DNA from: Schizochytrium sp. TIO01
Lineage: Eukaryota > Protista > Bigyra: Labyrinthulomycetes
NCBI GenBank assembly: GCA_004764695.1
Contig: SMSO01000033.1
Span: forward strand, 2,170,001 to 2,234,000
Reading direction: 5' to 3'
Length of the DNA stretch: 64,000 nucleotides
Below the pieces are notes generated by a model. That model was not told the origin of the DNA. It did not search any database and worked only from the letters and a program-made list of their open reading frames with translations. The stretch's first letter is position 1. Each line of letters opens with the position of its first letter. Made by a program: the position numbers and the translations under genes. Below are positions 3,354 through 20,265 of the stretch, in pieces.

Positions 3354-6300
3354 ATGCCCCTCTATCTCCAAAAGCGACGAACCTCGTCACGCTCGGTAGC
3401 GCCTTCAGATTATGATAAATCGCAAACTATTAGAAGCCTGCTCGAGTCAGGTGGAGCTCCTCTCACAAGCGAGTCTCGAAGAAATCAAGTATTTGGTACT
3501 TTCGGTTTATTCGGCTATGTGCTGGCTAGTTCATTGATCCCAACCTTCATTACTTTCAGAGATTATGATACAGACACAAAACATTTAGCAGGGGCAGTGG
3601 CTACAGCTTGCATCGCCAATATCATTTTCACCATCGAAACGCTAGCAAGCGTACAATTCAGGATATTGTTTTTTCTTCAAAAGATGAAGAACCCCATCAC
3701 CCTTCTGACAACTATACCATGGTCTCTTATTTCGTTGGCAGTTTTTGGAGACTCGATTTATACCCATGTAGCACTTTCTCTTTTCATTCTACGTTTGGGA
3801 AGCGCTACGGTTACGTACTGGCCATCATTTCTTGCCATGATTAAAAGAATATTTCCGAACCCACCTTTACCGATTATTCGCTTAACATGGCTTGCTGTTG
3901 TCATTCTGTGTATACAGGCTTTAACTTCAAGCACATATTACTTCCTCGGTACACACAGTACTGTAGGCTCTTCATGGATTGACGTTGATGATCTTCGTGA
4001 TGATAACTCCACAAGACAATTGGAAGATCCTAGTTCCGCGGGTACGCTTCGGTTTGCGCGGTCTTTTTATTATGTGTGGCAAACTCTTCTTACTTTGGGT
4101 TACGGTGATGTAGCTCCTGTGGCTGCCATTGAGCGCGTCTTTGGACTTATCCTTTGTCTCGCTGGAGTCTTTTTGATGGCTTACATGATTGCAAACTTGA
4201 CATCGTTCCTTGTCAATCTCGATTCCACGCCAGCTGCTCATCGTCACACTGTAGATAGCGTCGATGCTTTTCTCTCTGCTCAAGAAATTCCCTCTGTGAC
4301 ACGAAAGATTGTTCGGCGAGCACTTGATCGGGTTTGGATACGCTCGAAAGGTCTCACACGCAAACGGGTCTTCGATGACTTGCCTCCAGCACTTACGAGA
4401 AAGATCCTGGAATTCAAAGCCCAAGCTATAATTTCCTCTCCACTGTTTTGGGAACCAGAAACTAGGGACCCATGCTTTCGAGTCATTTTGTATCTAGTAG
4501 ATAAAGTTGAGCCTTCGATTTTTGATGTTGGCCGGACCATCCGTGACCCCTGGGATATGATACCATATCGCCCTGGGCTTATGTGGTTCCTTATGAATGG
4601 TACTGCATCGAAAAGACGACCAAAGAATAACCGTGCAGCACTAAGAATGGCTCTAGGGGATCCTGCAACACCAGTGAGAAGATCCTTCCGTGCTCAAGCG
4701 CTCTCTAAATTCACTACCTCAAGTCATGCCGAAGCACCTGGGCAAGATCCGGGAGAGAAATACCAGGTCAATGATCCTCGAGTCCATCCCAACGATATGG
4801 AATATGCAGCTCTAGAGCGTAGTTTTACGAACTCATCAGCTGTATTGTGGGGAGGCACTGCCAAAGGACGCAACCTGTACGAGCCACATGAAGATCTCAT
4901 CTCCGAGATTCACGATAACTACCCTAATATTCTCCTACCTGGAAGGTCCGTTGGCGCCCTTGGCTTCTTCAATGTTTTGCATTGCCCTCCCCCAAGATAC
5001 GTGGCTCTAACACGATGTGAAATTCTGTTTCTGAATTATGTTGATTTTCGTCGCATGGCACTTCTCTTCCCAGAATGGAAAATGGAAGAGACATCCTCAC
5101 ACGTGGTTCGCGCCATGGATGATAGAAGGAGGACAGAAAGTGATGAAGAGCCACAGATCGTGTACACGCCCAAGCTACCTATTGAGCTTGACTCTAGAAT
5201 CATCAATCAACTGGATGCAGAATGTTCTTACTCGTCTCTAGCGGTAGAAAGCGACCCTGAAGACGGTAATTCTACAGATGACAGTACTGGACCGGGTGAT
5301 GAAATGAAGCTAAATCATAGTTCTGATGACACACTGAATCTCTCAAGCTCTTTAAAACGATCAGGAGGAGCGACCAAATCGAAAAGGCGAACATCCTCAA
5401 AAGGTAACCCGCGCCGAGCAAGCACAAAAATTGCTGCGCTCATGCAGCAGCAAATCAATGAGAAGGGTCAACAGAAAAAAGGTTGGGCAAAACTCCTTGC
5501 CAGATTCGAACACAAGCCAGGAAGCCTGATTGATGTGACCTGGGATTGTGTACTGGCGATTGTCTTTACCTCGTATGGAATTTTCATTCCTATTCACATT
5601 GCCATGATTGTTGCAGGCATTCCTCTGCCTGCTGCATCATTGCTCCTAGGCTTTGGGGCGTTCATTGGAGATTCAATTGCCATTGCGAGCTGGAGGCTCC
5701 GACCTATTCTCTGTCCTCGAGACGAATCCGATGCTGAAAAGAAAAAGTCGGCAAATGTAACTGACGCCTTGATCCTGCAAACATCTGGCCATCGACTAAG
5801 TGGTGCATTTATATCTGCTGAGAACCGTCGAGCATCAAGGCAAGGCTCGATGTCACGTCGGAAATCTGTATCGACCCAAGTTGCACTTTCCCAGGGTTTG
5901 TGGTCATCACACCAAGAAAAATTGGCCCGCGTGCGTGCAGAAATGGCTTCTCGCGTGTCGCGAGTGATCAATCAAGCTCTTTCTTTTGCTGAGATTCTCT
6001 TATCGTGTCTCATGTTTATAACCTTGGCCCTTTCCTTTGCAATAGCTCTAGGAAACTACTCGAATGATCGCCAGCAAGAGCTTCGACGAGTCATGCATAT
6101 AATGCGTACGCCCTTCCTTATCCGACTCTTTAGCTCAGGTCGTTTAATTGATCGATTGTGTAATCATGTCCAGATGTGGATTGCACAACGGAAGCTTGCC
6201 GAGGCTGTTCGTCTTGATGACTTAACTCCAAATAACACGCCAGGGGATGAACTCATAGCGAAAAATCGGATGGCAAATAGTGAAATCGAAGAGTTGGCGG

Positions 6301-9300
6301 GAGGGGAGAAAAATAAGGTGTTCATCTCTGCGCGACTCTGTGTGTATTTTGTCTTGTGGGCTCACTTTACCGCATGCTTCGGCCTGGTAATCGCTGAAGA
6401 AAGTAGTATCGGATCAACGCGAACATCAGTGGCTAGTAAGTACATTGTGGGCATTTATTGGTCTCTCACAACAATTACAACCACTGGGTTTGGAGACATA
6501 GTACCTGATTCAACTCGTGATTCTTTGGTTACAACCACCTTTGCGATCATTGGTATTGCAGTGTACTCCTGCTTGGTGTCATTTATCGGGACTCTATTGA
6601 AGGATACGGAATTCTCAGATCACAATATGACACATCAACGAACTTGTGTGATGGCACTTCTTTTTGATAAAGAGATCTCGATGCATATACAAACAAAGGT
6701 GTCTCAATATTTACAATACGTTGAAGCACGGGATATTCTTGCCTTTCGTAGAGTTCTTGGGATCTCAGAAGACTTGCAGGCCCAAAGGTTTCGTCACTAC
6801 TCTCGGGTAAAGCGAGATAACATCCTCTACAACGTCTCCTCAGTGCCAATTAAGGAAGAAAGTGTGTTGTCAAAAACTAGTCCGCCCTCAAGTCATGACT
6901 TCCTGAATTACTCAACCTTCCTAATAAAAAGTTGCGACCGGACAACTTGTCCCGAGTCATTTGATTCAGATTTTCTTTGTGCTCGGGAACGCGATCAACT
7001 ATTGTTTGATCTGACTAGAGACATTTTAAAGAGCTCAACACTTCTTTCAAATGTTTCTGAAATTTTTCTTCATGAGGCTTGTACCCTATTAGACTACCGA
7101 GTCGTAAGTTGTGGAGATATTGTGATTTCAGAGTCTGACCCAGAATGGAGCTTGTTTTTTCTGTTTCATGGTTCCATGGAAGTAAGGGGCGAGAACGACG
7201 TAAAAATAAGAAACATTGTAGAAGGTCAAGTTTTTGGCGAACAATCTTTTGCCCTAATGTCACATACAATCCGAGAAAACTTTGACAATGATGATCATAT
7301 CAAAACAAAAGATTTCGAAACAGACAGAGAAGAAGACTTTGAAAACCAAGCTGACGCTGCACTTGATCTCAGAACCTCTAGAGGCGGCATGAAAGGAAGA
7401 ACTACTTCAACAACTGATCATAGTCGTGTTATTGCTTTAACACCATGTGAGCTATGGGTCTTGCAGGGTCGTTCTCTCCGATATCTCGAGTCAATGTTTC
7501 CGCAAGATAAGGAAAAGATCATCGCAGCTGAAACAGCCTTGAACATTGTTGAGCATCGCGACACTGTATCAAACAACCTTCGAAGAGGTGGCAAACTTGC
7601 GAAGATGGCGGGTGCAGAAGAACTCGTTGTTGCTCAGCGTAAAGGTCATACTGTCTTTGCAATCAATTCCCGGACTCAACAATGGTGGAAACTTTTGATG
7701 TTTTTCGTGCTGATGTGGAATTTATTCATTTTTCCTTTGGACCTTGCCTTTGCCTGGAGTATGAATTCCCCTGGAAGACCACACATTCTCGAGAACATGC
7801 TTGATGTTTTGCTCATCATCGATGTATTTCTGCGATTAGAGTTCTTCGAACTTGAAATCACCGATGGTGAGCGAATTTCAGATCCCAAAGAATTTAGGCC
7901 GCTTTATCTCCGATCATTGTATGGGATCGCTGATATCATTTCCGCTGTGCCAATTGATCTTTTTGTGGTGGCAGCAGGAAAAGGACTTATTCCCGTCTCA
8001 CGCATCAATAAGCTATTTCGAGCTGTGCGTTTGTTTGACCATGTTTCGTCTCTTGGAAGCCATGTTAAGAATCAAGCACACAAAAGCATTATCACAATCT
8101 CTAAGCTGATATTTGTTTTCTTGCTAGTGGCCCATTGGGAAGGATGTCTTTTTTATTCTGTAGGCATGGCTTCAGTGATCAATGGAGAGGCATCATGGGT
8201 TGATGATAATCATACAGGTTTGTTGCAGCTTCCAGGAGATAACAGTCAACAATCGGAACAAAATAAAGGAGTGGCTTTTATTGACGATAGTAGCAAATGG
8301 TACGAACATTATATTAGTGCATTATATTTCGCAGTCGCCGCTAGCACGTCTGTAGGTTATGGCGATGTGGTACCTGTCTCGCATCTCGAAGTTCTCTATA
8401 CCATTGCTGTCTTGCTCTTTGCGGGTTTGCTGTACGCTGTGATTATTGCTTTTTTGGAAGACATTGTGGCACAATCAGACTTGACCTCTACTTTGTACCA
8501 AAAGAAGGCTGATCTTCTTGGAGCATTTACTCAAATGCATCGCTTACCAAATAAGGTAAAAGCTGGTATTCGCAGCTACCTTTTTCGCATTTGGATGCAC
8601 CAGAAAGGTGTCAAAACAGAGAAAATTCTGAACTATCTGGGCAAGTCTCTCAGAGAGCAGATCACAATTGAAATTGTTGGGGAGCAAAACCTTCGAAAAA
8701 CCCCCGTCATTGGACCATCTCGTCTGTGGCGGTTTCTTGTGCATGATTTTAAATTCGATCGCTATCGCAGAAACTCTCTATTATACTACGCTGGTCAAGA
8801 TGCGGAAAATGTTTTCTTTATTCTGAAAGGTACTGTGGAAATTGTTTCTCCTGACCTTGAAAAGGTATTCTACACAGTTGAAGCAGGAGGGATATCTGGC
8901 ATAGATAGCTTTTTCAGACCGCTTCAACCTGGATATATGGCGTCCGCGCGCTGTAAAGGTAGTTGCGAAGTTGCAATATTGAATCGAAGGGTTATAAATG
9001 AAGCTTTAGCCAACAATCCCCACCTAATGAATCTATTCAAAGAAGAACTGCGTGTATTTCTTAGCAAGCCTAGTCAATTAGAACACACAAAGAGGAACCT
9101 GGACAAGCGCAAACTAACCAAGATGTTTCAAGATGGTGAGGAGCGAGAGAACTCGGGCAAGAGAAAATTTGACCTCAACAACTACATTCTTTTACCGTCA
9201 GACCCTGGCTACACGTTGTTTTATATATTCGTGTTTGCTATCACGATTGTCAACGGAATTATTGTTCCTTTGTGGGCTACTGCCGCAGCGTCTGAGGCTT

Positions 9301-11018
9301 CAACAATTTATACTTCCTCCACGTCATTAGTTTTCGTAATTGTCAATATACTCATGGACATGGTTCTTTGGCTTTTTATTGGCTTGCAACTGACCGTTAT
9401 TGCTCAGGTTAAGAATGGCCAAGTTATGAATACAGTTTCGAGTATTCGACATGAATACATGAGATCAGGGAACTTTGCCATGGATTTAATAGCAACTTTT
9501 CCACTAGACTTCATCGCACTCGCAGCAGGGGCAAGCTTAAGAGTCGTCTTTGCTCTCCGTGTTTTGAGATTGCTCTGGCATCATCATTTACCCGTCATTG
9601 TCAATACATTTAATAATTCGATTGATGCTTCATCTAGTGTTACTATATCAAGCGGGTACAGGCATCTTCTGAAAATTGTTGCGACTGTCATCATTGCCAC
9701 ACATTGGTTAGCATGCGGATATGGACGTTTATTATTATATACACGGGAAGACTACCAGATCGTGAGTATAACAGGCTCCTACATCAATCACCTATATTAT
9801 ACGTTCTACTCCGTCACCACAATTGGATATGGTAATGTGGAAGTCATAGGTGTATCTGAGAAGATTTATGCCATCATGGTTATGGTTGTTGGCTCATTTC
9901 TCTGTAATGCTGGCATTGTCTCAACATTGGTCTCAATTGTTGAAATTGAGGATTCAACTGCTGCTGCAGGTAATCGTCGGAAGGATGCCGCATTGCAAAT
10001 GGCCAACTGCTTCCAGTATCCGGACCACATAAAGAATATCATTCGTACATATTATGATAATATCTCTGAAAAGAATGGCGTAAATGATCAAGAGTGCCTG
10101 GATAGTTTACCATTATCTCTGAAGAGCACGGTCATGGACTTCCTTGCATTTAGTGCTGTTCGAGCTAGTCCAGCGCGGTGCAAGTGTATTTGGGATTTCC
10201 GAGACGGCCTTTTAGTGACCTTAGTTCGAAAGATGCGCATTGAGACGACCATTCCAATGGAGTTGCTTTATAAAGCAAACGAGCCTATGTTCCACGTCAC
10301 AATTGTAATGCAAGGATGTGTCCTTGTCTTTGGTGCTCATGATATTCGTCCCGAAGCTTTGAATCAACTTGCATCATCACCGTCTGCTCAAGAGCGCTCA
10401 CGCAATGGCTCTGTAATTGAAGAATATCTGCCTCCAGAGCAGCGTAGCCTTGAACTATGGAACCCAGGACTCCTTCTCCCTAGTCTAGCATGGGGTGAAG
10501 CATCGCCCGTTACCTTGGTATCAGGAAACTTTTGTGAGATGCTACTATGCGACAAGGATACATATGAAGCTATCGCTGCAATGAGACCTTGCATTGGTGG
10601 TCTATATTCTTCAATTTCAGAGCTATGTGACTCAAAGGAGGACCTGAAACACCTGTGCACATTCGCGAAACGTAGAGTTATCTCTGAGAGTATTGATTTT
10701 GTTCAAGCTGTGAAAGATTACCGGAATGCTCCAAACAATACTACAATTCTGGAAAAGCGTGCACGCGTCATCGTTGATCGTTTCATCCAACCCGAGAGTG
10801 AAGAGTCGATCAATATTAATCCTGAACTTGTGAGCTCGATTGTTGATCGTGTAACAAAAGATCCGAGCCACGAAATATTTGATGAAGCTTATAAAATTGC
10901 AGTATCAAGTCTTGAAAAGGACATCCTACCTCAATTTAAGGCCTCGGAAGAATATGAAAAAATGATTGCAAACATTCATCGAAGATCAGTCTTAGATTTT
11001 TTCCCTGAATCCTTGTAA
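3354..11018 (+). CDS. Four-repeat (pseudo-tetrameric) cyclic-nucleotide-binding-domain K+ channel (CNGK/tetraKCNG-like) with C-terminal RGS domain
   Basis: 2554-aa uninterrupted ORF. Four pore signatures: TLGYGD (~4092), TTGFGD (~6480), SVGYGD (~8349), TIGYGN (~9819). Each is preceded by TM helices and followed by a C-linker/CNBD-like region (e.g. GQVFGEQSF). The C-terminal ~125 aa (LCTFAKRRVISESIDFVQAVKDYR...IVDRFIQPESEESININPEL...IFDEAYKIAVSSLEKDILPQFKASEEY) match the RGS-box pattern. Confidence 0.93.
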   Translation: MPLYLQKRRTSSRSVAPSDYDKSQTIRSLLESGGAPLTSESRRNQVFGTFGLFGYVLASSLIPTFITFRDYDTDTKHLAGAVATACIANIIFTIETLASVQFRILFFLQKMKNPITLLTTIPWSLISLAVFGDSIYTHVALSLFILRLGSATVTYWPSFLAMIKRIFPNPPLPIIRLTWLAVVILCIQALTSSTYYFLGTHSTVGSSWIDVDDLRDDNSTRQLEDPSSAGTLRFARSFYYVWQTLLTLGYGDVAPVAAIERVFGLILCLAGVFLMAYMIANLTSFLVNLDSTPAAHRHTVDSVDAFLSAQEIPSVTRKIVRRALDRVWIRSKGLTRKRVFDDLPPALTRKILEFKAQAIISSPLFWEPETRDPCFRVILYLVDKVEPSIFDVGRTIRDPWDMIPYRPGLMWFLMNGTASKRRPKNNRAALRMALGDPATPVRRSFRAQALSKFTTSSHAEAPGQDPGEKYQVNDPRVHPNDMEYAALERSFTNSSAVLWGGTAKGRNLYEPHEDLISEIHDNYPNILLPGRSVGALGFFNVLHCPPPRYVALTRCEILFLNYVDFRRMALLFPEWKMEETSSHVVRAMDDRRRTESDEEPQIVYTPKLPIELDSRIINQLDAECSYSSLAVESDPEDGNSTDDSTGPGDEMKLNHSSDDTLNLSSSLKRSGGATKSKRRTSSKGNPRRASTKIAALMQQQINEKGQQKKGWAKLLARFEHKPGSLIDVTWDCVLAIVFTSYGIFIPIHIAMIVAGIPLPAASLLLGFGAFIGDSIAIASWRLRPILCPRDESDAEKKKSANVTDALILQTSGHRLSGAFISAENRRASRQGSMSRRKSVSTQVALSQGLWSSHQEKLARVRAEMASRVSRVINQALSFAEILLSCLMFITLALSFAIALGNYSNDRQQELRRVMHIMRTPFLIRLFSSGRLIDRLCNHVQMWIAQRKLAEAVRLDDLTPNNTPGDELIAKNRMANSEIEELAGGEKNKVFISARLCVYFVLWAHFTACFGLVIAEESSIGSTRTSVASKYIVGIYWSLTTITTTGFGDIVPDSTRDSLVTTTFAIIGIAVYSCLVSFIGTLLKDTEFSDHNMTHQRTCVMALLFDKEISMHIQTKVSQYLQYVEARDILAFRRVLGISEDLQAQRFRHYSRVKRDNILYNVSSVPIKEESVLSKTSPPSSHDFLNYSTFLIKSCDRTTCPESFDSDFLCARERDQLLFDLTRDILKSSTLLSNVSEIFLHEACTLLDYRVVSCGDIVISESDPEWSLFFLFHGSMEVRGENDVKIRNIVEGQVFGEQSFALMSHTIRENFDNDDHIKTKDFETDREEDFENQADAALDLRTSRGGMKGRTTSTTDHSRVIALTPCELWVLQGRSLRYLESMFPQDKEKIIAAETALNIVEHRDTVSNNLRRGGKLAKMAGAEELVVAQRKGHTVFAINSRTQQWWKLLMFFVLMWNLFIFPLDLAFAWSMNSPGRPHILENMLDVLLIIDVFLRLEFFELEITDGERISDPKEFRPLYLRSLYGIADIISAVPIDLFVVAAGKGLIPVSRINKLFRAVRLFDHVSSLGSHVKNQAHKSIITISKLIFVFLLVAHWEGCLFYSVGMASVINGEASWVDDNHTGLLQLPGDNSQQSEQNKGVAFIDDSSKWYEHYISALYFAVAASTSVGYGDVVPVSHLEVLYTIAVLLFAGLLYAVIIAFLEDIVAQSDLTSTLYQKKADLLGAFTQMHRLPNKVKAGIRSYLFRIWMHQKGVKTEKILNYLGKSLREQITIEIVGEQNLRKTPVIGPSRLWRFLVHDFKFDRYRRNSLLYYAGQDAENVFFILKGTVEIVSPDLEKVFYTVEAGGISGIDSFFRPLQPGYMASARCKGSCEVAILNRRVINEALANNPHLMNLFKEELRVFLSKPSQLEHTKRNLDKRKLTKMFQDGEERENSGKRKFDLNNYILLPSDPGYTLFYIFVFAITIVNGIIVPLWATAAASEASTIYTSSTSLVFVIVNILMDMVLWLFIGLQLTVIAQVKNGQVMNTVSSIRHEYMRSGNFAMDLIATFPLDFIALAAGASLRVVFALRVLRLLWHHHLPVIVNTFNNSIDASSSVTISSGYRHLLKIVATVIIATHWLACGYGRLLLYTREDYQIVSITGSYINHLYYTFYSVTTIGYGNVEVIGVSEKIYAIMVMVVGSFLCNAGIVSTLVSIVEIEDSTAAAGNRRKDAALQMANCFQYPDHIKNIIRTYYDNISEKNGVNDQECLDSLPLSLKSTVMDFLAFSAVRASPARCKCIWDFRDGLLVTLVRKMRIETTIPMELLYKANEPMFHVTIVMQGCVLVFGAHDIRPEALNQLASSPSAQERSRNGSVIEEYLPPEQRSLELWNPGLLLPSLAWGEASPVTLVSGNFCEMLLCDKDTYEAIAAMRPCIGGLYSSISELCDSKEDLKHLCTFAKRRVISESIDFVQAVKDYRNAPNNTTILEKRARVIVDRFIQPESEESININPELVSSIVDRVTKDPSHEIFDEAYKIAVSSLEKDILPQFKASEEYEKMIANIHRRSVLDFFPESL

Positions 11019-11193
11019 AATATGAACTACATAGAATATTATTCGCAATTTTAATCGTTGTTCAACAGCCTTCCCATGGACTAACATAAACTAACTTTTG
11101 GCATTTAAGCGCTCCACCATACTAGATGATTAAGCAGACCATAACCTAAATTTCCTAAACATCGCACGGCTATAGGAGGTTAAGCATCATACT

Positions 11194-12984
11194 TTAGTTA
11201 ATTTCATATCCTATGGTATCGAAAACATCGCAAAAGGGCTTGCGAAAGTTGTTGATTGTTTCAAAAGGTATTCCCATGGAGAGAATGGATTGGTTCTGCG
11301 TGGGGTTAAAGTGAGGAAATACTGGCATCGAATACATATTCGATCCCCGAAGCCAAGGATGTTGATGTAACGCATTTGGATCGCCATTTGCAGCAAAATT
11401 GGCCCAAAGAGCTTGCATTTTAGCACTCAGGACCTCCTCTTCTGGTGTGAGAATGGGATGATTCCCGTCAGGTGAGAGAAAAAATGTATTAAAGAGGACA
11501 CTGAGGTCCGTGCCGTGGCAAACATATGGGATACATTCTGGATCTGTCTGATTCTGGATATAAACACTGAATGAATCCAAGTGGTTGTATAGATAGACAT
11601 AAACGGGCTGAGTCTTAGCTACATTAAAGGCAAATGAGCGAATTGAGCAAGTGAAGATGTAGTCCGTACCAATCTGTGCTAGAAAGGGCCGTGTATCCTC
11701 TCTATCATGAGTTTCATTCTCCACAGGTGGCCCATAAGCCTTGAACACCTTGAGAGAATTTTTAACACCAAAAATTGCTAGCATGAATAATTCATAGTCT
11801 AGCTTTGACATAGGCTCAGACGAGGCTTTCCAAATAAATTGCACCGCTTCATTTGCTACACTCCCGATAATAACCGGAACTGGAGCAAGCTTACCTCGAA
11901 TTGCTGCTTCAATAGGAGATAGTGGCAGCTCTACACCATCCACTACAGGCGTCCAAGGCATAAACTGATGCAAAATCATTCCTGGGCGCAAAGGAAATTT
12001 GATTCTCTCCTGTGCAGTGAGCACTACTTCCTCTGAAAGATTCCTCAAACAATCTTCCTCCTCTTCTATAGTTTCCCACCAACGATAACATCCAACATAG
12101 CGCACAAATGATTCGCTCAACATCTGAGACTTACTCTCAGTTTCTGTTGGTAGAGCCACTGGATCTGACATCACAATAGCATGCTGGAAAAGAGACCAGC
12201 TTCGTGGACTTGCAAGGTGAGAAGCTACAGCAAACCCTCCTGCACTTTGTCCAGATATTGTCACCTTGTAAGGGTCGCCACCAAAGGTTTGGATATTCTG
12301 TTGCACCCACCTAAGTAGCATTCTTTGATCCTGCAAATGAAAGTTCCCATGAATTGATCCCCTTTTAGTATATAGACCACCCAATACGCCAAGGCGATAG
12401 TTGAAAGTGACAATGAGCACCTCTTGAGCCGAGGCCCACCGAGATCCATGATAAAGTTTAACCCCTCCCGCTCCTGCAATATAGTTTCCTCCATGTATGA
12501 AAACGATCACTGGAAGAGAAGCTAGAGTGTAGCTTTCTTCTTGATTACGAGGAGTGAAGACATTCACGGTTAGGCAGTCTTCGGAAAATGATTTTGGGCA
12601 AGTCATTTCGGGTCTTGGTAGATCACAGGTCTGAATACATCCAGGGCCAAACTTCTTTGCATCGTAGACGCCCTGTGGAAATTTCTTGGGTGGTTGCGGT
12701 GCAGCAAACCGCAGTGAGCCGAGAGGAGGGGTCGCATAAGGGATGCCTTTATATACACAAGTTGGGAAATCAGCAAACCATTCGCCTCTCACCTCGCCTT
12801 GGCCTTCAAGCAATGCTCTACAAGAATTCGCAAATGCCAAACGGCCTCTTTCTACGACAGTCGTCTCAACCGCTTGCCCTGTTGATACCAGCACGTACAA
12901 AATCAGACTTGTCAAGAACTGCACTACTCTCCAAGCGCGAACAACGACTCCAGAACTGACGCAGAAAAGTCTCCAACAACGCAT
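11194..12984 (-). CDS. Type-B carboxylesterase/cholinesterase-like alpha/beta hydrolase, probably secreted
   Basis: GIPYATPP, SEDCLTVNVF, FIHGG oxyanion motif, FGGDP..VTISGQSAGG nucleophile elbow, candidate acid (NEA) and His (CHGTDL); hydrophobic N-terminus. Confidence 0.93.
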   Translation of the reverse strand: MRCWRLFCVSSGVVVRAWRVVQFLTSLILYVLVSTGQAVETTVVERGRLAFANSCRALLEGQGEVRGEWFADFPTCVYKGIPYATPPLGSLRFAAPQPPKKFPQGVYDAKKFGPGCIQTCDLPRPEMTCPKSFSEDCLTVNVFTPRNQEESYTLASLPVIVFIHGGNYIAGAGGVKLYHGSRWASAQEVLIVTFNYRLGVLGGLYTKRGSIHGNFHLQDQRMLLRWVQQNIQTFGGDPYKVTISGQSAGGFAVASHLASPRSWSLFQHAIVMSDPVALPTETESKSQMLSESFVRYVGCYRWWETIEEEEDCLRNLSEEVVLTAQERIKFPLRPGMILHQFMPWTPVVDGVELPLSPIEAAIRGKLAPVPVIIGSVANEAVQFIWKASSEPMSKLDYELFMLAIFGVKNSLKVFKAYGPPVENETHDREDTRPFLAQIGTDYIFTCSIRSFAFNVAKTQPVYVYLYNHLDSFSVYIQNQTDPECIPYVCHGTDLSVLFNTFFLSPDGNHPILTPEEEVLSAKMQALWANFAANGDPNALHQHPWLRGSNMYSMPVFPHFNPTQNQSILSMGIPFETINNFRKPFCDVFDTIGYEIN

Positions 12985-16607: not shown

Positions 16608-17107
16608 GTGAGTATGTGCGATAGTGCTGGCGGCTGGGTTTCTACGCCACCGCCAGCTGGCGTTGGGGTGGTCTCTCTATATTGCCGTGTGTCCACGAAA
16701 GGGATCATGACTGAATGAACGGGTGACTGACGATTGAGCTTCTTCATATGCTTTATGTTCTTTTGGATTTGTTCTGTGTTTGTGCGCGGGCCTTGAATGC
16801 TATTGGATTTTGTGTGACGGTCGCACCTGGACCACGTGTCTTGGATGTGAATCCTTGACGATCGCTGCTGATGGATGTTAATCCTTTCGCGACTACTGGT
16901 TTTCGTGGCGTCGACCTAACCCCTGCGTTTTCGTTGCTTTCATTTGGTCTGATTCATGAACGCGATGCGATGGTTGACAACGATGAATTCACCATCGTTT
17001 TGCAAATCTGATGTTTTGTTTTCCTCGCAACATTGGACAACCCCCCTACTCTCGGACCTCCCGTGATGAATCAATGAATGAATAATGGATGCTATTAGAT
17101 TGCACAG
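16608..17107 (+). other. Putative 5'-UTR intron of the AspRS gene
   Basis: G|GTGAGT donor at 16608, T-rich interior, TTGCACAG acceptor ending 17107, about 60 nt upstream of the ATG at 17169. Confidence 0.5.
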
Positions 17108-17168
17108 AGATTTCGCCGTAGCTAGCGAGCGAATTTGATCGAATTAATTTATTCGCCGGATCGATACA

Positions 17169-19019
17169 ATGGCGGAAGAAGGCCAGAAGGAGGTGCCTGC
17201 TGAGGTCGCCGCTCTCCTCGAGCAGGTCGAGCAGCAGGGCGCCAAGGTCCGCGACCTCAAGGTCGCCCAGAAGGCGGGTGAGGCGACTGAAGATGAGGTG
17301 AAGGAGGCCGTTGGCGAGCTTCTCTCGCTCAAGTCCAAAATCCCTCCTGAGTTTGCCCCCACCCAGGGTGGTAAGGACAAGAAGAAGTCCAAGGAGAACG
17401 CTGGTAAGGCCCAGGACGAGCGTGCTCGCAAGAAGGAGCAGCGCCGTCTCGAGCGCGAGGCTGCCGCTCTTGCCAAGAAGGAGAAGGAGAACACCGAGCT
17501 CGGACCCGGTGTGCTCACTGAGACCTTCGGTGACCTTCCTCTTTCGCAGTCCCGCGATGAGGACCGCAAGGGTGAAAAGTGGACCTCCGTGAACCAGCTC
17601 ACTGAGGATCTTGCCGGCACTGAGGTGCTCTGCCGAGGCTACGTGCACACTGTTCGCGCACAGTCCAAGATGTCTTTCGTGGTCCTTCGCCAGCATGTGG
17701 CAACCGTGCAGTGCGTGGTGGCTGATGCTAAGATGGCCAAGTGGTGCTCGAGCCTTACGACTGAGTCCATCGTTGATATCCGCGGCGTGCTCGTCAAGTC
17801 GCCTGAGCCAACCTCGTGCACGCAGAGTGCTGTCGAGCTCCAGGTCAAGTCTCTCTTCGTTGTGAACCGTGCTGCTCTTCAGCTCCCGTTCCAGGTTGTC
17901 GATGCTGACCGCACCGCCGACGAGCTCGCCAAGATCGAGGAGGCTACCAGCAAGGGTGAAGCTGGTCTCGTTGTCGTTGGCCAGGAACTCAAGCTTGACC
18001 ACCGCCACCTGTCTCTGCGCACCCCGCTCCAGCAGGCTATCATGCGCGTTTCCTCTGCTGTCTGCCAGTACTTCCGTGAGTTCCTTCACGACCAGGGTTT
18101 CGTCGAGGTCCAGACCCCTAAGCTCCTTGGTGGCAGCTCGGAGGGTGGCAGTGAGGTTTTTAAGACCCAGTACTTCGGCAACGACTGCTGTCTTGCACAG
18201 TCCCCTCAGCTTCACAAGCAGATTCTTGCAGCTTGCAGTGGCTTCGAGCGTGTCTTCGAAATTGGCCCTGTCTTCCGCGCAGAGAACAGTAACACCGCAC
18301 GCCACCTTTGTGAGTTCCACGGCCTCGACGTTGAGATGTGCTTCAAGGAGCACTACCATGAGGTTCTCGACATGTTCTCCGACATGTTCTTCCACATTTT
18401 TGACAGCCTCAACGAGAAGAACAAGGTTGAGCTTGAGACCATCCGCAACTACTTCCCCAGCGACCCCGTCGTCTACCGTCCTCCTAAGGAGTTCGAGGGA
18501 AAGATTAAGACTGCTGGTACAAAGAGTAACACTCTCGTGCTCTCCTTTGCAGAGGGAATTGCTCTCCTCCGCGAGGACGGCATTGGCCCCGACGAGGCTC
18601 CGGATCTTGATGATCTCTCCACCCCGATCGAGAAGCGCCTTGGTGCTCTCGTGAAGGAGAAGTACGGCGTCGACTGGTACTTCCTTGACAAGTTCCCCAT
18701 GTCTGTGCGCCCGTTCTACACCATGCCGGATGCCGCAAACCCGGACTACTCGAACTCCTATGATTTCATGCTTCGCACTCAGGAGATCATGTCCGGTGCT
18801 CAGCGCGTGCACGACCCCGAGATGCTCTCCAAGGCTATCGCTGCCAAGGATATCCCGGTCGAGTCTCTGAAGTTCTACATTGATGCCTTCCGCCACGGTG
18901 CTCAGCCCCATGGTGGTGGTGGTATTGGTCTCGAGCGTCTTGTCATGCTCTTTACCGGATGCCCCAACATTCGCTACAGCTGCTTCTTTGTGCGTGACCC
19001 CACCCGCCTCACCCCGTAA
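17169..19019 (+). CDS. DARS1: Cytosolic aspartyl-tRNA synthetase with N-terminal WHEP domain
   Basis: OB-fold anticodon domain (RGYVHTVRAQSKMSFVVLRQ), LAQSPQL, motif 2 GPVFRAENSNTARHLCEF, EIMSGAQRVHD, motif 3 PHGGGGIGLERL, RDPTRLTP end. Strong C-ending codon bias typical of a highly expressed gene. Confidence 0.97.
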   Translation: MAEEGQKEVPAEVAALLEQVEQQGAKVRDLKVAQKAGEATEDEVKEAVGELLSLKSKIPPEFAPTQGGKDKKKSKENAGKAQDERARKKEQRRLEREAAALAKKEKENTELGPGVLTETFGDLPLSQSRDEDRKGEKWTSVNQLTEDLAGTEVLCRGYVHTVRAQSKMSFVVLRQHVATVQCVVADAKMAKWCSSLTTESIVDIRGVLVKSPEPTSCTQSAVELQVKSLFVVNRAALQLPFQVVDADRTADELAKIEEATSKGEAGLVVVGQELKLDHRHLSLRTPLQQAIMRVSSAVCQYFREFLHDQGFVEVQTPKLLGGSSEGGSEVFKTQYFGNDCCLAQSPQLHKQILAACSGFERVFEIGPVFRAENSNTARHLCEFHGLDVEMCFKEHYHEVLDMFSDMFFHIFDSLNEKNKVELETIRNYFPSDPVVYRPPKEFEGKIKTAGTKSNTLVLSFAEGIALLREDGIGPDEAPDLDDLSTPIEKRLGALVKEKYGVDWYFLDKFPMSVRPFYTMPDAANPDYSNSYDFMLRTQEIMSGAQRVHDPEMLSKAIAAKDIPVESLKFYIDAFRHGAQPHGGGGIGLERLVMLFTGCPNIRYSCFFVRDPTRLTP

Positions 19020-20265
19020 ACTTCTTTCTTGCCTCAGAAGTACCTGCAACACTATACCAACTGGCAGTACCACTTTTCCAACTCCATCCATCAAGGGGCT
19101 GCCATATCAAAAGCTCAAGCATGGACTACGGAATTGATGAGCAAGAGAAGAACACCTGCTTAGGCAACTTGTTGTTGTTGTTATTGTTGTTTGTATCTTT
19201 TCTAATTCTCTAAATCTATATGGAGAAGTCAATTCTGTATGCGTTATTCTTGGTGGTACTGCATGTGCATGTCTGGTCCGCCAGCTCGGCCAGCAAGTTG
19301 TTCATTTCATGAAAATGATGACAACAAACATGAAAAGAACAAGAAGGACAGAAGGTCTTTGACGTACTACTCACTCTAACACTATGAAACACCACAATGA
19401 TCCAAATGTGCAAAAACACGCAAGAAAACAGATGCGCTTGCATGGGGAGCCGTAGAATCTGAACCATCATCTAGCTGGCCTTGTGCAATCACCCCATATT
19501 TTCTCTTTTTGTCATTTACAACTTTTCTCCTTGTATCATTTTCCCCTCCCAGCACCCAACCTGCGGTTACCTGCGTAATTGTCAATCTGACATTTTATGC
19601 CCTAGTACATTTCTCGGGTGCGGGCTCCTAATGTATCTTGAAATAATATATAGCATGTTGGAATGCTGCCTCTGCTTCCACTCAAATTGCAAACACCGTT
19701 CTGCGACCTTCTTTCCCGTCATAAGTCGTCCGGTTTTCCCCATTGCGATCGGTTTCAACACATTCGGGTTCTCCTTTCTGAATGGTTCTGAAATTGTTTA
19801 TACTATATCCGCATCGTCCCTTCGTGCGTAGTTCCCACACAGAGTGAGAACGCACGGATATATGAATATATCCAACTCCTGCTTTTGTTAAATGGTCTGT
19901 CAGATTAAATTCCACCATGGGATGTATGTATGTCTGTATGTATGTGTGTTTCTATCTTCACCAAGTCGTACCTAGCTATTAGCTGTCTTAGCAATATGAC
20001 TACCTACCATCTATGTACTTATCGTAGCTATCTTCTAGCCCCTCCAAAAAGGCAGACTTCAAAACCAGAACCAAGTTATAGAGTCCAACACCACCGTGGG
20101 GCTTGAGCTCGTTGTTGGGTGCATAGTTCAGACTTGCCCTCTAGCTTGGACTTCTCTATTCATTTTTAAAGGAACCGCAGTTTGCTGATTCGCTTGCCTT
20201 GTTTTGGTTTGTCTTGATCGATCAACTTTGCGTCACATAAATTGTAGTCCAAGATATAATTGCTC

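Follow-up and report, generated by a model that had tools for sequence, protein, structure and literature searches.

CNGK channels are known from metazoans (sea urchin, zebrafish) and from a choanoflagellate (Bonigk 2009; Fechner 2015, PMC4749565). A 2020 survey of channels with a cyclic nucleotide-binding domain (CNBD) lists two-repeat tandem channels in oomycetes and dinoflagellates and none in labyrinthulomycetes, and RGS domains are unmentioned there (PMC7576140). A K+ channel and an RGS GTPase-activating protein (GAP) work together in the RGS-GIRK complexes of animal neurons and heart (for instance m2R-RGS6-IKACh), with fast switch-off of G protein-driven currents (PMC3812209). According to a survey on how G protein-coupled receptors (GPCRs) signal, RGS domains combine with many others, including cyclic nucleotide (cNMP)-binding ones, and often with transmembrane segments; channels do not appear in its main text (PMC3971589). 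Here we describe a gene from Schizochytrium sp. TIO01, found in a stretch of 64,000 nucleotides (nt) of genomic DNA (the window), that encodes a real and conserved four-repeat KCNH-like K+ channel with an RGS domain as its C-terminal tail.

A sequence-only reading of the window had stated that no characterized ion channel was known to carry an RGS domain, and our literature search also found none. No paper was found that joins RGS (PF00615) with PF00520, or RGS with a CNBD in a relevant sense, the supplements of architecture surveys being outside this search. Public protein databases contain the fusion, but as far as checked it is uncharacterized and unnamed.

The channel and the RGS domain share one reading frame

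The window corresponds to C32:2170001-2234000 of a 64-Mb genome in 37 contigs. Its longest open reading frame (ORF), at 3354-11018 on the forward strand, has no internal stop. Contigs from four public runs were aligned over 5400-11399, which places the first 2 kb (5') of the gene outside the comparison, and showed no joints, insertions or deletions. X6, probably DNA, gave one 10.3-kb contig of even depth spanning the whole compared stretch. X17, X18 and X20 are probable RNA assemblies, with short contigs, low depth over the channel gene and higher depth over its neighbor. One X17 contig (record 5, 2790 nt) matches 8275-11064 unbroken and takes in everything from pore 3 to 46 nt past the stop codon, including repeat 4 and the RGS domain. 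X18 record 13 (9892-10815) and X20 record 21 (10136-10614) reach into or up to the RGS part. Positions 11065-11196 are uncovered by run contigs, and the next contig begins at 11197, in a convergent carboxylesterase gene. The strains differ at 38 bases of the compared stretch, 20 of them synonymous and 18 non-synonymous, with no frame breaks; this pattern is consistent with purifying selection.

The sequence-only reading took the channel and the RGS box for one polypeptide. The stop-free ORF agrees with this, as do the single contigs of the probable RNA runs that cross the channel-RGS junction. We take the gene to be real and intronless and, probably, transcribed. If instead a channel gene and a small RGS gene merely abutted in frame through an error of assembly or gene model, the usual warning about long ORFs joining genes would apply; nothing specific pointing to such an error was found. 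However, 3354-11018 holds neither a stop nor a frame change, and the junction is crossed both by contigs of three probable RNA runs and by DNA contigs of other strains. At least seven divergent clusters of relatives and a Mucochytrium transcript fragment have this junction as well, and independent gene calling on another assembly gave the near-identical P0001. With an unbroken frame, junction-spanning contigs and a junction that recurs in at least seven clusters, a fusion artefact was rejected as scarcely conceivable.

The four repeats are K+ channel modules related to KCNH

Over the whole protein, Pfam recognized four stretches of Ion_trans (E 1.9e-37) and four of Ion_trans_2 (E 3.1e-30), and a piecewise scan gave a separate pore match in every repeat. 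The four K+ selectivity filters were found exactly where the sequence-only reading had placed them: GYGD, GFGD, GYGD and GYGN, in the order of the repeats, at amino acids (aa) 249, 1045, 1668 and 2158 (nt 4098, 6486, 8355 and 9825). The S4 segment of repeat 3 has four basic residues, one at every third position, while that of repeat 4 has three and that of repeat 1 has one in its core. Among structures in the Protein Data Bank (PDB), the best relative of repeat 3 is KCNH1 (Eag1; E 1.5e-40), matched from S1 to the end of the cyclic nucleotide-binding homology domain (CNBHD), followed by KCNH5, KCNH2, SthK, CNG and HCN. Pfam detected no PAS family, such as the N-terminal PAS/eag domain of KCNH channels, on the whole protein or on repeat 1.

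When the four repeats were compared with each other, repeats 1, 3 and 4 were about equally similar and repeat 2 was the most divergent; the pairing of repeat 1 with 3 and of repeat 2 with 4 known from metazoan CNGK was not seen in this comparison. A long basic and Ser-rich insert separates S2 and S3 of repeat 2. This voltage-sensor insert contains an RRxS/RKxS cluster, RRASRQGSMSRRKSVS (aa 825-840, window 5826-5873). The cluster offers candidate PKA/PKG-type phosphorylation sites, through which indirect control by cyclic nucleotides would be possible. Taken together, the sequence matches strongly support a predicted pseudo-tetrameric K+ channel of the CNBD-channel superfamily, of the KCNH/HCN/CNG type.

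The C-terminal tail is an R4-like RGS domain

An RGS box had been proposed at about 10620-10980. The Pfam check puts an RGS domain at 10614-10961, with an E value of 4.1e-17 in the whole protein and of 5.2e-19 for the isolated tail (69.2 bits, cut-off 23.9 bits). In a phmmer search of the PDB, the top matches were the R4-family GAPs RGS5 (E 3.7e-10), RGS1, RGS2, RGS18, RGS8 and RGS16; residues 66-174 of RGS4 (chain 1agr_E) were also matched. We modeled aa 2190-2554 with AlphaFold2 (mean predicted local distance difference test score (pLDDT) 78.7, predicted template modeling score 0.68). The model consists of C-linker helices, a beta roll and the RGS helical bundle, the last with a pLDDT of about 90. 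In a structure search its nine-helix RGS fold aligned with RGS3 (Z 17.3, root-mean-square deviation (rmsd) 2.0 A, 124 residues) and with RGS4 from the complex with AlF4-activated G-alpha-i1 (1agr; Z 16.8, rmsd 1.6 A, 122 residues), and the RGS-homology domains of Axin, SNX and GRK proteins scored Z 14-16. The tail is a genuine and apparently intact R4-like RGS domain.

In animal RGS proteins, Asn128, Asp163 and Glu87 of RGS4 contact switch I/II of G-alpha-GTP. The equivalents of all three are retained here, as N2487, D2523 and E2445. The RGS4 numbering agrees with the range of 1agr_E in the PDB match. In an alignment of nine family members, P0158 and P0220 have the canonical E-N...N...D...R contact set, and P0131 has contact residues like those of the TIO01 copy, but with R at the 167 position. 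Since these three relatives keep a nearly full set, the fused RGS domain looks ancestrally GAP-competent, a state seemingly retained in this copy and eroded in some lineages.

RGS-tailed channels form an old clade

To find relatives, we ran an exhaustive HMMER search with repeats 3-4 plus the RGS domain as the query. It returned 8102 relatives, many of them 2000-3000 aa long with several matched stretches. Among the best 150, which were checked for RGS tails, P0126, P0127, P0131/P0282, P0140, P0158, P0171, P0220 and P0261 have one. P0282 is a full-length cluster mate of P0131, and P0127 is a metagenome protein. P0171 is GBG26762.1 / A0A2R5G6T0 of Hondaea fermentalgiana, automatically named 'Potassium channel AKT2', and P0261 is a Mucochytrium quahogii transcript fragment that spans the channel-RGS junction. 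P0126 and P0140 are labeled Durusdinium trenchii; each lies on a contig of about 10 kb nearly filled by one intron-poor gene, and they could be either dinoflagellate genes or labyrinthulomycete contamination. The RGS domain of P0140 was matched by phmmer with the TIO01 RGS query (E 1.6e-5) and not by Pfam. A word-indexed protein search with the whole protein gave only the near-identical P0001 and remote matches, a profile of the C-terminal parts returned three channels, all without RGS, and a protein atlas held generic channel clusters only, none with RGS. The fusion that had been read in this one gene thus recurs in relatives and is not unique to it, being found in at least seven clusters and in a public Hondaea protein.

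In a FastTree phylogeny of 48 four-repeat channels built on 1698 columns, a quick tree with long branches, all seven RGS bearers of full length fall into a single group (support 97). The group splits into two subgroups, each with one gene of the TIO01 genome. The RGS architecture therefore marks a clade of at least seven clusters at 50% identity, and the RGS domain follows repeat 4 in every member. The next clade (P0128 and others) has a C-terminal C2 domain in place of RGS; the GYGN filter of repeat 4 is common to the RGS clade and P0128. When repeats were placed singly in a tree, likewise a quick FastTree one with long branches, those numbered 3 and 4 in the RGS and C2 clades grouped by position (support 99 and 100), and therefore the four-repeat layout is older than the split between the two. 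The trees took in unnamed representatives and the paralogues of this genome, and no named metazoan CNGK sequence. That the channel-RGS fusion is ancient within its clade is strongly supported by these sequence comparisons.

The four repeats of P0132, a metagenome protein of 2407 aa, group together and not by position. This suggests either an independent tandem duplication or concerted evolution, and four-repeat CNBD channels may have arisen on more than one occasion. Other modules are attached to related tandem channels as well: C2 (P0128, P0139), a RING finger (P0288) and ankyrin repeats (P0289). Domain accretion seems to concentrate in the tail past the last repeat.

The CNBD-like domains have lost the cyclic nucleotide contacts

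A C-linker/CNBD-like region had been claimed after each repeat. A C-linker/CNBD profile built from the family itself matches after all four, while Pfam sees those of repeats 2 and 3 only: it reports two cNMP_binding stretches over the whole protein (E 1.7e-20), with a CNBD after repeat 3 (E 9.2e-10) and part of one after repeat 2 (27.4 bits). The domain of repeat 1 is interrupted by an insert of about 120 aa and that of repeat 2 by an acidic insert, with its FGE motif retained. The repeat 4 part of the AlphaFold2 model matches the C-linker/CNBD of SthK, CNGB1, HCN, Eag1 and AKT1 in Foldseek (E ~1e-7).

We examined the phosphate-binding cassettes for the residues that contact the nucleotide. 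The Glu position reads A, E, I and S in repeats 1 to 4, so that Glu is kept in repeat 2 only, and the Arg-Thr/Ser positions read P-P, D-H, Y-M and S-P, with the conserved pair in none. In a HMMER alignment of repeat 3 with the E. coli cAMP receptor protein, I1850 corresponds to E72 and Y1861-M1862 to R82-S83. Tyr is also found at the Arg position of repeat 3 in P0126 and P0127. FGE...RTA is retained in P0129 and in a paralogue of this genome without RGS (C31, Table 1); because that paralogue keeps it, the loss of the cassette is specific to the RGS clade. Lacking the cNMP contacts, the four regions are therefore better described as cyclic nucleotide-binding homology domains, of the kind that KCNH and plant channels have.

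Direct gating of the RGS channel by cNMP is unlikely, since all four CNBD-like domains are without the Arg-Thr/Ser pair and the nearest solved relative is KCNH1. The cassette residues make canonical cNMP gating, too, unlikely. Of the label 'CNGK-type' given by the sequence-only reading, the four-repeat K+ layout with CNBD-like domains holds, whereas gating by cyclic nucleotides, with Arg-Thr/Ser lost in all repeats and Glu in three of four, is doubtful. Taken literally, that label would make the protein a CNGK orthologue opened by cGMP or cAMP that additionally carries RGS. The four-repeat layout, K+ filters and CNBD-like domains do match CNGK, and the best-kept CNBD-like domain is that of repeat 3, the cGMP-binding repeat of the sea-urchin channel (PMC4749565). 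However, the Arg-Thr/Ser pair is replaced throughout and Glu survives in repeat 2 alone, the Tyr of repeat 3 recurs in P0126 and P0127, and the cassette is kept in C31, outside the RGS clade. Even canonical CNBDs are no guarantee of cNMP gating, since pH, rather than cNMP, gates the zebrafish CNGK (PMC4749565). We consider such an orthologue very improbable.

Past their CNBD-like domains, repeats 2 and 3 each have a linker motif, [KRN]NLxxxxK[LV]xKM (window 7572-7607 and 9090-9125), that recurs in paralogues and distant relatives. Its place seems to recall the Y/F-N-L intrinsic ligand of KCNH channels.

The junction after repeat 4 is short. Nearly all RGS-bearing relatives have IGG[LVI/Q][FY] directly before RGS helix 1. 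In the AlphaFold2 model CNBD alphaB (model residues 212-219) is followed by the beta-bridge residues I2414 and Y2418 (pLDDT ~84) and then by RGS helix 1. Because the modeled order runs from alphaB through IGGLY to RGS helix 1, the RGS bundle starts at the place that the alphaC 'lid' takes in a CNBD. The IGGLY strand might then lie in the binding pocket, much as the intrinsic ligand does in KCNH channels.

The genome encodes many possible G-alpha partners

Four genes for four-repeat CNBD-type channels were found in a six-frame search of the genome, two with and two without RGS. The C34 copy, which has RGS, carries an extra tail of about 220 aa. The C31 copy has canonical FGE...RTA/RSC cassettes in at least repeats 2 and 3 and, by its sequence, is the better candidate if the organism has a true CNGK-like channel gated by cNMP.

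At least 13 ORFs from the same search exceed the Pfam cut-off for G-alpha, and C30 holds several of these in tandem; the RGS domain therefore has plentiful candidate partners. At least four tandem G-alpha genes lie within 26 kb at C30:1577709-1603772, and a copy at C8:834-1880 scores as the C30:1602726 copy does (372.5 bits, E 3.5e-110). For a protist, a set of at least 13 is large. In the best G-alpha (L002:1450-2583, 378 aa), the N terminus bears an MGxxxS/Cys acylation motif, switch I reads RTRVRTSGI and switch II reads DVGGQR. A complex prediction of the RGS tail with this G-alpha, made without controls, scored 0.00 and weighs neither way. About 40 RGS-domain ORFs are encoded in the genome; one, on C33 (L021:3890-7999), combines BAR, RGS, PH and ArfGAP in a single ORF of more than 1370 aa.

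Possible coupling of the channel to G-alpha

The sequence-only reading had raised the attractive idea of a G-alpha effector and a GAP combined in a single protein, with zoospore chemotaxis as a possible use. We propose, at roughly even chances, that the channel is coupled to G-alpha through its RGS domain. The RGS tail would dock one activated G-alpha-GTP per channel, directly below the gating ring of repeat 4. Docking would alter the K+ conductance and concurrently accelerate GTP hydrolysis, so that a receptor signal could become a brief, self-terminating change in membrane potential. Gating itself would probably be by voltage, pH or another factor and not by cAMP or cGMP. A more specific version, which we hold as a tentative and rather doubtful idea drawn from the model, is that activated G-alpha replaces the cyclic nucleotide as the ligand of a CNBD channel. 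With the RGS domain at the place of the alphaC lid and the IGG[LVI][FY] strand acting like the KCNH intrinsic ligand, docking would move the gating ring and GAP activity would time the response. If true, the protein would be a one-chain transducer from receptor to voltage, possibly for zoospore steering.

Several points weigh against this coupling. In this copy the RGS4 contact positions N88, R167 and S85 are changed to S2446, Q2527 and I2443. Changes at N88 and R167 of RGS4 weaken G-alpha-i binding. The C34 copy, P0126 and P0140 lack the equivalents of N128 and/or D163, and retention of the domain without canonical GAP residues favors a non-GAP role in those lineages. The RNA status of X17, X18 and X20 is a guess, and the comparison in which they were used is limited to 5400-11399. 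Finally, RGS domains have been shuffled into many protist architectures (PMC3971589), about 40 of them here, and a fusion alone is weak evidence of direct gating.

Another possibility, which we rate as doubtful though serious, is that the channel is just a membrane anchor for a localized GAP or scaffold, in which case G-alpha binding would shorten G protein signals without itself gating the pore. Retained equivalents of N128, D163 and E87 would suit this role, and 7TM-RGS proteins and the non-covalent RGS-GIRK complexes are precedents for it. Fusions of RGS domains with transmembrane segments are widespread among eukaryotes, according to the GPCR-signaling survey (PMC3971589), and the RGS ORFs of this genome occur in varied contexts such as BAR-RGS-PH-ArfGAP. 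A mere tether, however, need not be short, conserved and confidently modeled, as this junction is, and the position after repeat 4 is constant throughout the clade.

The domain might also be a non-GAP RGS-homology module that no longer acts on G-alpha, as in Axin, GRKs and sorting nexins, and that either serves within the molecule to cover or regulate the last CNBD-like domain or binds some other partner. The residues at the 128 and 163 positions are K and V in the C34 copy, E and E in P0126, and Q and E in P0127; a paralogue in the same genome and the Durusdinium-labeled relatives keep the domain without the N128/D163 equivalents. The changes equivalent to N88S, R167Q and S85I in this copy, the start of RGS helix 1 at the place of alphaC in the model, and the structural scores of Axin, SNX and GRK domains are also in line with such a module. 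Yet R4-family GAPs come first in sequence searches, and the near-full contact set of P0158, P0220 and P0131 makes the ancestor look GAP-competent. On balance a non-GAP module appears improbable for this gene.

If the channel is coupled to G-alpha, a role in zoospore behavior would be plausible for a flagellate stage. A paper on the Aurantiochytrium zoospore proteome, with its supplements, mentions no RGS protein and no K+ channel. Thraustochytrids of the Aurantiochytrium type are culturable and genetically transformable.

Features and neighboring genes

The features of the gene and its paralogues are listed in Table 1. Downstream of it and convergent with it is the carboxylesterase ORF (11194-12984, reverse strand; Pfam COesterase E 5e-108). 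Its 3' end seems to overlap the channel gene, as an RNA-like X20 contig with a depth of 22.5 starts at 10956, 62 nt upstream of the channel stop codon. An aspartyl-tRNA synthetase gene at 17169-19019 on the forward strand (tRNA-synt_2 E 4e-73) is 80% identical to that of Hondaea fermentalgiana, which places the genome among the thraustochytrids (Labyrinthulomycetes, stramenopiles). The 682-codon ORF antisense to it (17046-19094, reverse strand) is most likely no gene but a shadow ORF.

Table 1. Features of the RGS-tailed channel gene (positions in the window) and its paralogues in the TIO01 genome.
Feature	Residues (aa)	Position	Strand	Basis or remark
Whole gene, four-repeat K+ channel with C-terminal RGS		3354..11018	+	2554 codons + stop; 2554 aa, RGS
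Repeat 1 S1-S6	45-287	3486..4214	+	Ion_trans E 8.5e-10, Ion_trans_2 E 8.6e-12
Repeat 1 filter TLGYGD		4092-4109	+	
Repeat 1 C-linker/CNBD-homology	288-398 + 520-582	4215..5099	+	family profile E 6.5e-15, 2.9e-4
Repeat 2 S1-S6	~725-1082	5526..6599	+	hydropathy; Ion_trans_2 E 2.4e-9; partial Ion_trans match
Repeat 2 filter TTGFGD		6480-6497	+	
Repeat 2 CNBD-homology	1208-1303 + 1355-1418	6975..7607	+	family profile; Pfam 27.4 bits
Repeat 3 S1-S6	1443-1706	7680..8471	+	Ion_trans E 3.8e-21
Repeat 3 filter SVGYGD		8349-8366	+	
Repeat 3 C-linker/CNBD-homology, complete	1705-1924	8466..9125	+	family profile E 3.8e-53
Repeat 4 S1-S6	1954-2193	9213..9932	+	Ion_trans E 9.6e-7
Repeat 4 filter TIGYGN		9819-9836	+	
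Repeat 4 C-linker/CNBD-homology	2200-2414	9951..10595	+	family profile E 6.6e-19; missed by Pfam
Junction motif IGGLY	2414-2418	10593..10607	+	alignment of 9 family members
RGS domain	2421-2536	10614..10961	+	Pfam RGS 69.2 bits
C34 paralogue		L022:574-9165		2863 aa, RGS
C30 paralogue		L023		no RGS
C31 paralogue		C31:6162812-6170542 (L024:1812-9542)		no RGS; four good CNBDs, Pfam E 7e-58

Comparison with known systems

In animals, G proteins reach K+ channels via G-beta-gamma, and the off-rate is raised by RGS proteins brought in through non-covalent contacts. The conserved covalent link described here serves as a 'Rosetta stone', hinting that G-alpha can partner directly with a K+ channel of the voltage-gated type. 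If the coupling proposed here is true, it would add a new principle of gating or modulation to the CNBD-channel superfamily. It would also offer a compact system for relating GAP timing to the shape of an electrical signal, and possibly a single-chain tool that turns GPCR activity into membrane potential. Four-repeat CNBD-type channels with RGS or C2 tails are widespread and diversified in labyrinthulomycetes, whereas the 2020 survey lists no tandem channels from this group (PMC7576140).

Two relatives in the same clade, the Hondaea protein GBG26762.1 and the C34 paralogue, are likewise built as four-repeat channels that end in an RGS domain. They fall in the other subclade, and their RGS domains are divergent (31-34 bits). 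Like CNGK/tetraKCNG channels, the TIO01 protein has four six-transmembrane (6TM) repeats per chain, a GYG or GFG K+ filter in each and a C-linker/CNBD-like region after each, and in both the best-preserved CNBD-like domain is that of repeat 3. It differs in its C-terminal RGS domain, unreported for CNGK in the literature found, and in lacking the cNMP-contacting Arg-Thr/Ser in every repeat; the comparison is one of architecture. As in the KCNH (Eag/Erg/Elk) channels, the CNBD-like domains of the TIO01 protein lack the phosphate-binding arginine, and among solved structures repeat 3 is matched best by KCNH1, from the voltage-sensor domain through the pore and C-linker to the CNBHD. However, KCNH channels are homotetramers, while the TIO01 channel has four repeats in one chain and an RGS tail.

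Two further systems resemble it in the use of RGS. The 7TM-RGS proteins of the plant AtRGS1 type, as described in the GPCR-signaling survey, also carry RGS on the cytoplasmic tail of a polytopic membrane protein, but their membrane part is receptor-like with seven transmembrane segments and not an ion channel (PMC3971589). The nearest functional analogy is with the RGS-GIRK complexes, in which a K+ channel is held together with an RGS GAP. Those complexes contain a 2TM Kir channel, gated by G-beta-gamma, and a separate RGS protein, whereas the TIO01 channel has four 6TM repeats of the CNBD family and its RGS domain is covalently attached.

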